From positions 181,164,001 to 181,228,000 of the forward strand of contig OZ038378.1 in the NCBI GenBank assembly GCA_964036045.1: a stretch of DNA of 64,000 nucleotides, written 5' to 3'. The notes under the pieces were generated by a model that saw only the letters and a list, made by a program, of their open reading frames with translations, was not told the origin of the DNA and ran no database searches. Below, piece by piece: positions 9,312-16,840 of this stretch. Position 1 is the first letter of the stretch. The number at the start of each line of letters is the position of its first letter. Source of the stretch: Eutreptiella sp. 'Long Island Sound 2002' (taxonomy: Eukaryota > Protista > Euglenida). A program made the position numbers and the translations under genes.

Positions 9312-9455
9312 TTAGTGCTGAATGCACCGCAAAACCAACAGCGAGAGCTCGTCATATGTCAAGTAATCGTGCCGCGTCATACCCATTTGCCGCCAGGCCG
9401 CATTTGCAGATGTAAATATATCGTCGCCAATCACTGCGAACTCCGCATAGTACTC
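9312..9455 (-). CDS. PAC-like gene exon 6 (last): second EF-hand-like motif and stop
   Basis: Acceptor CTTCTGTGCAG|GAG, phase 0; EYYAEFAVIGDDIFTSANAAWRQMGMTRHDYLTYDELSLLVLRCIQH-TAA completes a helix-loop-helix pair with exon 5. Confidence 0.8.
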   Translation of the reverse strand, partial: EYYAEFAVIGDDIFTSANAAWRQMGMTRHDYLTYDELSLLVLRCIQH

Positions 9456-11971: not shown

Positions 11972-12463
11972 CGCCAAGCGAGTCATACTGACGTATCCGT
12001 CTCCATCGGGGTCCAGCTGGGCCCATAGCTCCTTCAGCTCCGCCTGAGTGTGCGGGAGCCGCATGGTGCGTGGGAGCGGCGCACCGACATCGTCCCGGTC
12101 GGGGCCGAAGTCCGGGATTTGGGTGGAGGGGGGCATGTCCAAGTGGTACGCGGGGGACTTGGTGTGCGTCGGGCAGTGCGTCTCCGTCACACGGAACTCG
12201 TCGGCCGGTGGGGGTGCGCCTGAGGCGGACGGCGGCACGGCCTTGAGGGGGGGCGTAGAGCCACGGCCACCGGACGCCCGCTTGGCGGCCCAGTACTGTT
12301 CAGGGCTGGGGCCCTCCAGCTTTTTCTCAGCGGCGGCCTGCAACATTGAGGGCGGGGGATGCTGAGGATGAGAGTGAGACGAAGACTGAGACTGTGGCTG
12401 GGGCGGGGGCGAGGGCAAGGGCGAGGGCTCGGACTCATGCTGCACATCGGCACGGACCAGGGT
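11972..12463 (-). CDS. PAC-like gene exon 5: Pro/Ser-rich linker and first EF-hand loop
   Basis: Acceptor CCCCATCCCAG|ACC (alternative in-frame CAG|CAT at 12439); ELKELWAQLDPDGDGYVSMTRLA then donor GCG|GTATGT. Confidence 0.75.
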
Positions 12464-13414: not shown

Positions 13415-13779
13415 CCTGTCCTTGGCGGCTTGCGTATCCTCCATCAGCCACGCCGTCCAGAAGTTCTCCACAAGGAGGTCCAGCGTCTGCGGCACGACAT
13501 ACGGGTCCCGGTCCCCGGGGGCAAACAGCTTCACGCTCTCACTCTCCACTTGGCCACTGCGCCCGACCCCCAGTCGGTGGGTCCCGCAGCGGCGGAGGTC
13601 CGCGGCGATGGGCTGCGGGAGCGTGGCCGCCACGTCTTCGGTGATGAGGACGCCGGCCCCCAGGGGCACACAGTACTCCAGCGTCCAGTTGGCCAGGGTC
13701 AGCCCCCCCCCCACGAGGGTGTAGTTGGCCCGGGTGTCGAAGCGGACATTCCCAGCGACGAAGTTGGAGGCCACGACGG
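13415..13779 (-). CDS. PAC-like gene exon 4: C-terminal half of cyclase-homology domain
   Basis: Acceptor CTGCAG|CC (phase 1), donor AGG|GTATGC; FVAGNVRFDTRANYTLVGGGLTLANWTLEYCVPLGAGVLITEDV matches the class III pattern vvaGniG..r..YTviGd.vNlAsRle......ilise. Confidence 0.85.
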
Positions 13780-14019
13780 CTGCAGTGTGATGTCAAGTGA
13801 TCGGTTGGAAGGCTACGGACGTGGGCCCCATTCTTCCCCATCATTTCCCGTCCTCGTGGCGATGGGAGGGGCACCAACGGCGATGCTAACCCCCTAACCG
13901 CCGGTCAACAGGTCACAGACACCTGCCCCCCCTCCCTCTGCCCCCGGTCGTTCCCTCTGCTCCAGCATCAGGCTCTACCCCAGCCCTGCCTCTAAACCCC
14001 AGCCCCGTGCCTGCTTGCC

Positions 14020-15070
14020 AGGGAAGTATTAGAGGGGGGGGAGGGGGGGGGGGGGTCTGGAACCCAAAAGCTTGTGTACCAAAAATGGCCCGACAAGATT
14101 TGCCCTGTTTTTAATTTCGTTTTTTCCCACTATGGTCACTTTGGTCGGGGGGGGGGGGTTAAAAGGGGGGGGGGGGGGTTGGCAAAAGGCCTCGGTATTA
14201 GGTTGTTTGCCTTTGGCGGTGCCTATTGGCCTCTTGCCACTGCTCATTCTGACCCTCTGTGGGTCCGAACGTGTTTTGGTTGTGTCAACGGAGCCCCTGG
14301 ATGACTTGTCCTGTTTGACTACTCCAGGGTGAGCTGTCCCGGGGACGGGCTGTTGCCCGTGCCGTTGACCAGGTGCATCCAGATGCACACTCCGAGTCTA
14401 TGCTGGGTTTGCCGGCCCCAGCACTGACTTGTGTGCGCTGGGGTGTGCATCTGCAGAATAATTTTCCTGACAGGGGCTTCTAACAACCACAATGATTCTT
14501 TCCCTCTTGTCCTTTCCTTCTCCTCCTTCTGCGCTCTGCACCGTTTTCGGCGAGCGCGGTCTGCCCTGTCCTGTTACCCTCCTTGGTTCGCCCCTTTCCC
14601 CCTGCCCAGTTTCTTCCCGGCCCTCTCCATTCTTTCTGCCCTGGGGGGCATTGGGTGGCGGGGGTGCGTGTTGTTGTAGGGAGGGGGTAGAGGAGGGGGC
14701 AGGGGAGGGGGAGTGGGAGTGGGTTCGTCGCACCCTGCCCCCTCCTTTCCCTTGAGGGGGAAGATCCTGGCTCAAGGGGGCTCCTTGTTGGTGTCAGTGT
14801 GCTTGGTGTGGGTGGTTTTGGCCACTTGCTTCTGCTGGCCCACATATCCCAGTCTGTCCTGGGCATAGTTGCATGCTGTTTGCTGGCATGATGGCCTTAG
14901 CTGGCGCGGCGGTGGTAGACCATGCACGTAGCGCCCGCCGTCAGTCTAAGGGTTCAAGACCGGGGCTAATCCCCCTTTGTACGCGTCCCCGCAGTTGGGG
15001 AGAGGGAGGAGTCCGCGGCCTCCCCCCCCTTCCCTGTAAAGAGTCTGTTGGCTCATCACCCAGGGTCCTC
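14020..15070. repeat. ~1-kb composite repeat, copy 1 (MITE-like head plus body), intron 3
   Basis: Near-identical to 15823-16840 (GGTCTGGAACCCAAAAGCTTGTGTACCAAAAATGGCCC...GGCAAAAGGCCTCGGTATTAGG...CCTGTAAAGAGTCTGTTGGC). Confidence 0.85.
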
Positions 15071-15301
15071 GGGTAAAAGGGGGGGGGACCCCGCCGTTCC
15101 TGTGGTGTACGGCCATTGTAATACTTCCCTGCTGTATGCCTGCACCCTGCGCGGAGCCCGGCCCATTCCCCATGCCCATGCTCATGCCCAACCCGCGCCA
15201 CCAGTCTGTAATGGGCAACGATGGGGACCCTCCCACCGCCATCGGTTCCCCCCAACCGGCGGGCCCGTGATCCCTATGGAGCAGCCCACGCACGCGACGA
15301 C

Positions 15302-15653
15302 CTGCGGTGGCGTACAGCAAACGGCCCACATCCCGCTGCTTTGAAGCTTCACGTACCCCATCGATGCGGCGCACGGCGGCGCATGCGGCGGCGAAGGCGA
15401 CCTCGCTCCGCTCCCCCGGGAATGTGGCGTACAGGGTGGTGCCGCGCACGCCCCACACTTCGCCGCCGCTTTGGTCGATCCCCTCCATCACGTTGTGCGT
15501 GAACAGGTTGATGAGCCGCGTCAAGTCGTCGCGGTTCTGGGCGTCGGTCCGGCGGCGGGGCATGCCCCGCATGATGGTGTCGAAGCCCAGCATGCCCACC
15601 GCGACCACGAAATTCGACGTGGGGCAGGGCTCCAAGAACACCGGGTTGTACCC
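15302..15653 (-). CDS. PAC-like gene exon 3: N-terminal half of cyclase-homology domain
   Basis: Acceptor CGTCAG|GGG, donor GCAG|GTCGTC (phase 1); VVAVGMLGFDTI and IDQSGGEVWGVRGTTLYATFP align to fxDIxGFt and i...gG.vdKfiGDaimavf; about 88% GC3 by hand count. Confidence 0.85.
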
Positions 15654-15822
15654 CTGACGCGTGACCGGGCGGTGCAGTTGTTATGGGTGAGTGTGGGATC
15701 TCTACACAACGGGAATTCTCAGGAATGTATACAGAAGAGGATCTACACATCAGCGCGCTTCTCTGAGGCTTCTCTGAACAAACTGCCAAAAAGCTGAAAC
15801 CAAGGCGTGGGCCAGGCTGAGG

Positions 15823-16840
15823 CAGAGATGCATTAGAAGAGAGGGGGTAGGGGTGGCGAGGGTCTGGAACCCAAAAGCTTGTGTACCAAAAATGGCCCAA
15901 ATCAATATTTCCTTTTGTAATTTCACTTTTTCCCACTATGAAATCTGGGTCCGGGGGGGCCGGGGGGTGGCAAAAGGCCTCGGTATTAGGTTGTTTGCCT
16001 TTGGCGGTGCCTATTGGCCTCTTGCCACTGCTCATTCTGACCCTCTGTGGGTCCGAACGTGTTTTGGTTGTGTCAACGGAGCCCCTGGATGACTTGTCCT
16101 GTTTGACTACTCCAGGGTGAGCTGTCCCGGGGACGGGCTGTTGCCCGTGCCGTTGACCAGGTGCATCCAGATGCACACTCCGAGTCTATGCTGGGTTTGC
16201 CGGCCCCAGCACTGACTTGTGCGCGCTGGGGTGTGCATCTGCAGAATAATTTTCCTGACAGGGGCTTCCAACAACCACAATGATTCTTTCCCTCTTGTCC
16301 TTTCCTTCTCCTCCTTCTGTGCTCTAAACCGTTTTCGGCGAGCGCGGTCTGCCCTGTCCTGTTATCTCCCCCTCCTCGCCCCTTTCCCCCTGCCCAGTTT
16401 CTTCCCGGCCCTCTCCATTCTTTCTGCCCTGGGGGCATTGTGTAGCGGGGGAGCGTGTTGCTGTGGGGAGGGAGTAGCGGAGGGGGAGGGGTAGTGGGAG
16501 CGGGAGTGGGTTCGTCGCACCCTGTCCCCTCCTTTCCCTTGAGGGGGAAGATCCTGGCTCAAGGGGGCTCCTTGTTGGTGTCAGTGTGCTGCGTGTTGGT
16601 GGTTTTGGCCACTTGCTTCTGCTGGCCCACATATCCCAGTCTGTCCTGGGCGTAGTTGCATGCTGTTTGCTGGCATGATGGCCTTAGCTAGCGCGGCGGT
16701 GGTAGACCATGCACGTAGCGCCCGGCGTCAGTCTAAGGGCTCGGGACCGCGACTAGTTCCCCTTACGCGTTGGGGCGAGGGAGGAGTCCGCGGCCTCCCC
16801 CACGAACCCCTGTAAAGAGTCTGTTGGCACATCACCCAAG
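15823..16840. repeat. ~1-kb composite repeat, copy 2, intron 2
   Basis: Direct repeat of 14020-15070; begins with CAGAGATGCATTAGAAG, a CAG(G/A)GA-type terminus also seen inverted near 12720-12737. Confidence 0.85.

Follow-up and report, generated by a model that had tools for sequence, protein, structure and literature searches.

We identified, in a 64,000-nucleotide (nt) window of the Eutreptiella sp. 'Long Island Sound 2002' assembly (GCA_964036045.1, contig OZ038378.1, forward-strand positions 181,164,001 to 181,228,000; coordinates below count from the first letter of this window), a minus-strand gene that appears to encode a photoactivated adenylyl cyclase (PAC) stripped of its catalytic residues. 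The gene, which we refer to as a pseudo-PAC, comprises six exons and has a 551-aa product, as determined by tblastn with two homologues (P0002 and P0003) and then by exact splice sites. Its domain order is BLUF, helical linker, cyclase-like domain, conserved helix, Pro-rich linker and EF-hand-like pair. As judged from alignment, the cyclase-like domain lacks every residue that two-metal catalysis and the binding of ATP and of the transition state require, and it is predicted to synthesise neither cyclic AMP nor cyclic GMP. We consider it probable, at roughly 0.6, that this domain derives from a PAC of the OaPAC/bPAC type, with a single BLUF and a single cyclase domain, and has been kept as a non-catalytic, light-driven dimeric module.

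The catalytic positions were mapped with an hhalign alignment, in OaPAC numbering that agrees with the OaPAC literature (PMC11533990), between the three members of the family and 57 distinct bacterial BLUF-cyclase proteins of about 360 aa. The latter were drawn from 66 bacterial loci carrying the OaPAC motif IGDCVMAYF and include a Laspinema protein close to OaPAC. The family consists of the window protein, P0002 (546 aa, from a Logan transcript contig) and P0003 (563 aa, from MMETSP, and the same as JGI protein P0005 except at its start). In OaPAC, the metal and ATP site is formed by Asp156, Asp200 and Glu279 of one chain together with Asp270 and Asn273 of the other (PMC11533990). The nine catalytic or ATP-contacting positions that we mapped are 95-100% conserved in the bacterial set. 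In exon 3 of the window gene, Gly163 (15596-15594) stands at the position of the first metal Asp, D156 (Arg in both P0003 and P0002), Gly211 (15452-15450) at that of the substrate Lys, K196 (Gly in both), and Thr215 (15440-15438) at that of the second metal Asp, D200 (Thr in P0003, Ala in P0002). In exon 4, Thr281 (13720-13718) retains the base-contact Thr, T266 (Thr in P0003, Ala in P0002), Thr288 (13699-13697) replaces the transition-state Asn, N273, and Trp292 (13687-13685) replaces the Arg, R277, with the same two substitutions in both homologues. Gly285, Leu294 and Gly331 stand at D270, E279 and K314, again with identical residues in P0003 and P0002. The equivalents of D156, K196, D200, D270, N273, R277, E279 and K314 are thus gone in all three members, and the positions of Lys196, Asn273 and Arg277 (G/G/G, T/T/T and W/W/W) lie in a region aligned with confidence 9.

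A sequence-only reading of this stretch had examined six canonical positions by eye, judged five of them lost with only the Thr left, and stated that the domain has neither the Asp pair nor the Lys/Asn/Arg set; hhalign places all six as it did, no alignment restores the residues, and the residue map finds both sets missing from each family member. The loss is wider than that reading described, since D270, E279 and K314 are also replaced. As the single domain holds no half-set, no active site would form in a homodimer or in any heterodimer that includes the window protein. The weakest placement, which rests on the profile-profile alignment, is that of the first Asp: the posterior confidence of its strand is about 0.6, and an invariant Asp168 (in 'GFD') lies five residues downstream. 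The equivalence of Gly163 with D156 is favoured by 'x-F-x-T' and Pro anchors, by a 44+8 spacing to the second Asp and by a predicted strand/helix boundary. Even with Asp168 as the first-Asp equivalent, the other losses would be incompatible with two-metal catalysis.

Several of the replacement residues are themselves invariant in the family (G211, R213, T216, GGG284-286, T288, W292, L294 and C297). The acidic residues of the pocket have become Gly or Arg (D156), Thr or, in P0002, Ala (D200), Gly (D270) and Leu (E279), and both Arg213, encoded in exon 3, and Trp292 are new. This pattern suggests that the former metal site is now neutral to basic and has been re-used as an interaction or anion-binding surface. 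A further family-specific feature of exon 3 is an 8-residue basic insertion after the conserved Pro175 (codons 176-183, 15534-15557), which reads RRRTDAQN in the window protein, KRRDGVRN in P0003 and RRRPPAQV in P0002 (a P-R/K-R-R pattern). It sits in the alpha1-alpha2 loop, after the beta1-alpha1 segment, and adjoins the former triphosphate site.

The relationship to cyclases emerges at the level of family profiles. Pfam searches of the exons and of the full-length homologues gave no match to PF00211 even at E <= 1, the homologues matching BLUF only; phmmer searches of single exons against the PDB returned noise (WD-repeat designs, uS11 and exopolyphosphatase), and when only the N-terminal half of the domain was used as a profile, the PDB yielded no match. 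A four-row family profile of the domain, searched against the PDB, found OaPAC and bPAC chains only (E 4e-6 to 4e-5), with CyaB the next cyclase at E 0.33. Moreover, hhalign aligned the three-member family with the 57 bacterial proteins at a probability of 99.8% (E 3.8e-28) over 362 columns that begin at BLUF residue 1 and run through the whole cyclase domain, and aligned the cyclase domain alone at 97.4% (E 1.3e-11) over 170 columns. By language-model (ESM-atlas) features, exons 3 and 4 are each nearest to PF00211 clusters (0.93 and 0.95). Structure predictions used P0003, with the window exons as alignment rows. The AlphaFold model of P0003 residues 1-395 is poor, with a mean predicted local distance difference test score (pLDDT) of 54, but shows strands and helices in the order expected of the beta-alpha-alpha-beta-beta-alpha-beta core of cyclases, and the top 23 Foldseek matches to this model are OaPAC or bPAC (about 380 columns, E 1e-17 to 1e-13, template modelling score (TM) 0.3-0.4). 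On these comparisons, exons 3 and 4 together encode a class III cyclase homology domain. The candidate reading that this is not a cyclase domain was rejected, as the family profile, hhalign and the language-model features all point to class III cyclases.

The gene lies in GC-rich, eukaryotic DNA, where motif-bearing open stretches on the minus strand run from 15680 to 14949 and from 13792 to 13403. All six exons are collinear with P0002 and P0003 in tblastn searches of the window, and each of the five introns (3,156, 11,232, 1,522, 1,077 and 2,516 nt, in order) is bounded by GT..AG. The start codon lies in exon 1 (30470-30294), which also encodes the first half of BLUF with the flavin-pocket residues Tyr16 (30425-30423) and Gln59 (30296-30294). 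Exon 2 (27137-26886), identified by tblastn and by collinearity with the PAC linker, encodes the rest of the BLUF domain and the helical linker and ends in the residues TLAQ. The 11.2-kb intron 2 (26885-15654) splits Gln143 from Gly144 within the 'QG-x-NP' handle motif, and this junction between exons 2 and 3 is placed by homology only. Exon 3 (15653-15302), supported by the gene model, hhalign and an RNA contig, encodes the N-terminal half of the cyclase-like domain; its borders, read from the DNA, are an acceptor cag| before 15653 and a donor CAG|GTCGTC after 15302. Intron 3 (15301-13780) runs from GTCGTC to CTGCAG. Exon 4 (13779-13415) encodes the C-terminal half of the domain and the conserved helix that follows it, between an acceptor ctgcag| before 13779 and a donor AGG|GTATGC after 13415, and its phase 1 junction with exon 3 reads ...LLYATA-A-VVASNFVAGN.... 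Exon 5 (12337-11972) contains the conserved helix AAAEKKLEGPSPEQYWAAK, the Pro-rich linker and the first EF-hand-like helix-loop, DPDGDGYVSMTR, and exon 6 (9455-9312) the second EF-hand-like helix-loop-helix and the stop codon. The extension C-terminal to the cyclase-like domain amounts to roughly 220 aa and ends in the EF-hand-like pair. Exons 3 and 4 have a GC content at third codon positions (GC3) of 0.88-0.89, whereas the GC content of intron 3 is 0.61; the frame described from the sequence alone as intact and high in GC3 belongs to an unbroken gene of six exons joined by GT..AG introns.

Two of the splice junctions are found in RNA. Public sequencing runs containing this stretch number four, three of DNA and one a 2022 estuary metatranscriptome; contigs of the three DNA runs go straight through the introns, so they carry no evidence of expression. 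In the metatranscriptome, a 241-nt contig spans 15476-15302 plus 66 further letters, whose expected depth (2.3 x 66/128 = 1.19) is the sole signal of the bin 13692-13819, i.e. 13779-13714. Another contig, of 246 nt, matches 13628-13414 without any mismatch and has 31 further letters, whose expected depth (2.2 x 31/128 = 0.53) matches the bin 12284-12411, in which exon 5 begins at about 12337. The junctions between exons 3 and 4 (15302 to 13779) and between exons 4 and 5 exist in RNA, as read from contig pieces and depth arithmetic rather than from joined alignment rows. The spliced contigs differ from the window by 0-1 mismatches, which indicates that this organism, or a strain very close to it, is a member of the estuarine community and expresses the gene there.

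The same repeat occurs twice in the window, at 14029-14900 within intron 3 and at about 15750-16680 within intron 2. Both copies translate to the same pseudo-ORF (open reading frame), MHLDAPGQRHGQQPV..., and in the DNA runs the summed contig depth over the repeat exceeds that over the neighbouring unique exons by a factor of 10^4 to 10^5; the RNA run covers the repeat as well. It is a very high-copy element of this genome.

The reading frame is unbroken in all three lineages, although their synonymous sites have diverged to saturation. Conservation is highest in the cyclase-like domain, where 52 of 175 residues are invariant across all three members and identities are 46-47%, compared with 42-43% in the BLUF core and 22-32% in the tail. 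Codon maximum likelihood (GY94+F3X4, three taxa) gave an omega of 0.067 for the cyclase-like domain and 0.097 for BLUF, and likelihood-ratio tests rejected both omega = 1 (2dlnL, twice the log-likelihood difference, of 123) and omega = 0.5 (2dlnL 52.7). The ratio of nonsynonymous to synonymous change (dN/dS) is about 0.5 by NG86 with dS above 1, at which dS is underestimated, and codon maximum likelihood was used instead. Despite an imprecise omega and only three taxa, these tests exclude neutrality under the codon model. The sequence-only reading had proposed a selected pseudoenzyme; dN/dS is not near 1, and the same architecture and essentially the same losses recur in two other lineages. 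By these measures the domain is a selected pseudo-cyclase and not part of a decaying gene.

When exon 4 was searched exhaustively with HMMER against 1.84 billion representative proteins, the only real relatives were the window's own ORF fragment, P0002 and P0003. The window protein and the two homologues are 35-39% identical to one another and have the same architecture. At their starts (L001:1-11 and L002:1-8) the homologue transcripts carry ATTTTTTTTCG and TTTTTTCG, the 3' tail of the spliced leader of euglenids (full leader ACTTTCTGAGTGTCTATTTTTTTTCG, PMC6242988), which identifies them as trans-spliced euglenid mRNAs and the family as euglenid. Word-index protein searches with P0003, the family alignment and P0002 returned the queries alone, and no relatives emerged when metagenome contigs were scanned for exon 4 or for P0003. 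The pseudo-PAC family is thus very sparse in public data, with three lineages among the 1.84 billion representatives. Literature searches brought up no report of a BLUF protein whose cyclase domain is inactive or degenerate, whether from euglenids or from any other group, and a transcriptome study of Euglena gracilis mentions BLUF proteins only with double cyclase domains (PMC6366073).

Pfam recognises BLUF in both homologues (1.1e-14 and 2.7e-12), and hhalign shows the flavin-pocket equivalents of OaPAC Y6, N30 and Q48 to be kept in the family, the linker to be free of indels relative to the alpha3/handle region of PACs, and the cyclase scaffold, including the beta4-beta5 tongue, to be retained. 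The window protein also preserves the 'QG-x-NP' motif of the handle.

At the other end of the protein, the AlphaFold model of the P0003 C-terminus (pLDDT 74) has a helix-loop-helix, helix-loop-helix topology. The top 50 Foldseek matches to this tail are all EF-hand proteins (calmodulin, S100 and CDPK lobes), at weak values (E 0.06-0.2, TM 0.5-0.6). A canonical 12-residue EF-hand loop has its ligands at positions 1, 3, 5 and 12, the last being Glu or Asp. In the tail (11972-12010 and 9315-9455 in the window), a DxDxDG loop occurs only as the first loop of the window protein, where position 12, the site of the bidentate Glu, is Arg; no calcium-ligand pattern is present in P0002 or P0003, and the second loop is non-canonical in all three. 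Pfam EF-hand_1 scored 16.1 bits for the window exon, below the cut-off of 25.4, and had no match in the homologues. The EF-hands named in the sequence-only reading therefore persist as a weakly predicted EF-hand-pair-like fold (best Foldseek E about 0.06) but not as conserved calcium ligands, and a calcium relay as the conserved function of the tail appears unlikely.

We hypothesize that the pseudo-PAC most likely works as a dimeric switch whose conformation is driven by light and whose output goes through the C-terminal extension or through partners. The BLUF domain would still bind flavin and photoswitch, and the signal would travel through the conserved linker and handle into a dimer of dead cyclase domains, presumably PAC-like, parallel and head-to-tail as in bacterial PACs. 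Blue light would thereby alter the geometry of the paired domains, and the change would be read by the C-terminal extension, which bacterial PACs do not have, or by partner proteins rather than by catalysis. A wider proposal, which we offer tentatively, is that the euglenid pseudo-PAC represents an undescribed class of blue-light receptor, a light-gated interaction or ligand module that could work through its basic pocket and EF-hand-like tail without cyclic nucleotides.

Several observations weigh against the proposed descent and switch function. The structure model is poor (pLDDT 54), and the geometry of both dimer and pocket rests on inference. Of the three members, only the window protein preserves the handle motif well; P0003 does so less, and P0002 does not. 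Trp90 and Met92 of strand beta5, the light-signal output pair of BLUF in OaPAC, align to L/L/Q and F/L/L in the three members (exon 2), so the BLUF output mechanism may be unusual and its coupling different or weak. The family comprises three lineages only, whose genes may be orthologues or paralogues. Finally, synonymous change has reached saturation, with 1.7-3.4 substitutions per codon on the branches, which makes the value of omega imprecise, and NG86 gives about 0.5.

Two alternatives deny that the domain is a selected pseudoenzyme, and we consider both of them remote. It is hardly credible that the gene is a pseudogene, in decay or dead since recently, with a frame left open merely by its high GC. 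The domain does go unrecognised by Pfam, and many long ORFs are expected of high-GC DNA, but the 551-aa frame is unbroken over six exons with canonical splice sites, spliced RNA is present, two other euglenid transcriptomes contain collinear homologues of full length, omega = 1 is rejected, and exon GC3 stands well above the GC of the intron. A chance ORF was rejected together with this reading. It is very improbable that the domain is an active cyclase with non-canonical residues, such as the invariant Asp168 of 'GFD' serving as the first metal Asp. The posterior of about 0.6 for beta1 and that invariant Asp five residues downstream leave some room for such an arrangement, but the second metal Asp, Asp270, Glu279, Lys196, Asn273, Arg277 and Lys314 are replaced by non-ligating residues (confidence 9), and no conserved acidic substitutes lie nearby.

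Two further alternatives accept the loss of catalysis and differ on what the domain does. A role as a ligand sensor, in which a nucleotide, phosphate or some other anion would bind in the altered pocket but not be turned over, so that the protein integrates light with a metabolite signal, is rather unlikely in our estimate. The exchange of four acidic residues for neutral or basic ones, the invariant Arg213, an Arg at the D156 position in two of three members, the invariant GGG284-286 and a base-contact Thr281 kept in two of three would all suit such a sensor; however, Lys196, Arg277 and Lys314, the normal holders of base and phosphate, are gone, Thr281 is Ala in P0002, and the pocket model is unreliable. 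We also regard as unlikely a dominant-negative role, in which the dead domain pairs with an active class III cyclase and kills both composite sites, possibly in a light-dependent manner. Euglenids, as is generally known, use PAC for photobehaviour, a role reportedly described by Iseki in 2002. The cyclase fold and tongue region are retained, and OaPAC sites are built from both chains (PMC11533990), such that a partner without either residue set would disable both. Conversely, no active single-domain PAC partner came up in the present analysis, the PAC subunits of Euglena are known to have two cyclase domains each, presumably paired together, and the conserved new pocket residues R213, GGG and W292 would not be needed for simple poisoning.

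PACs are textbook examples of BLUF-controlled enzymes and widely used optogenetic tools, and here the sensor, linker and scaffold appear to have been kept with catalysis dropped. If the light-driven switch is real, the movement of a cyclase dimer is useful in itself, and the pseudo-PAC offers a natural entry point to what such movement controls, including partners, ligands and flagellar targets in a phototactic alga. It would also be a light-switchable protein-protein device of natural origin and, among eukaryotes, a counterpart to the BluF of bacteria. More generally, class III cyclases would join the enzyme folds with dedicated pseudoenzyme descendants. There is a warning for annotation as well, in that Pfam labels such proteins as BLUF only.

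Among known systems, OaPAC and bPAC are the sole significant PDB relatives by profile. They are homodimeric, single-domain PACs with the same domain order, collinear through BLUF, linker/handle and cyclase, and they share with the pseudo-PAC the BLUF Tyr, Asn and Gln and, in the case of the window protein, the 'QG-x-NP' motif. In contrast to both, the window family is without the metal, substrate and transition-state residues, has lost Trp90 and Met92, has gained the 8-residue basic insertion and the EF-hand-like tail of roughly 220 aa, and, at only about 20% identity, is encoded by a eukaryotic, intron-rich gene. By its sequence, the window protein is therefore a PAC descendant and not a PAC, as it fails the defining catalytic features. 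Mammalian adenylyl cyclases (C1/C2) and soluble guanylyl cyclase (alpha/beta) have a degenerate second site that is kept as a regulatory pocket. Those domains each keep a complementary half-set and one site remains active, whereas the window domain has neither. The sequence-only reading had taken the C1/C2 heterodimer as its frame and suggested that the domain may be a PAC inhibitor, a dimerisation partner or a relay to the EF-hands. That frame is not the natural one, as the nearest relatives, of the OaPAC/bPAC type, form homodimers and have a single cyclase domain; this and the missing calcium ligands weaken the suggested roles.

PAC alpha and beta of Euglena gracilis are likewise euglenid photoreceptors that combine BLUF with class III cyclase domains, as is generally known (PMC6366073). 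Compared by description only, they are arranged as BLUF-cyclase-BLUF-cyclase, whereas the window protein has one BLUF, one cyclase-like domain without catalytic residues and an EF-hand-like tail. The BLUF-like axonemal proteins LAX28/TEX47 were also checked and are unrelated. A functional parallel lies in Escherichia coli BluF (YcgF), in which a BLUF domain is joined to a degenerate EAL domain that is enzymatically inactive and acts by binding to the BluR repressor (PMC3509220). The EAL domain has a phosphodiesterase fold and the protein is bacterial, so that the likeness is one of functional analogy, without homology outside BLUF; the logic of the two proteins, a BLUF sensor joined to an enzyme-derived inactive domain, appears to be the same.

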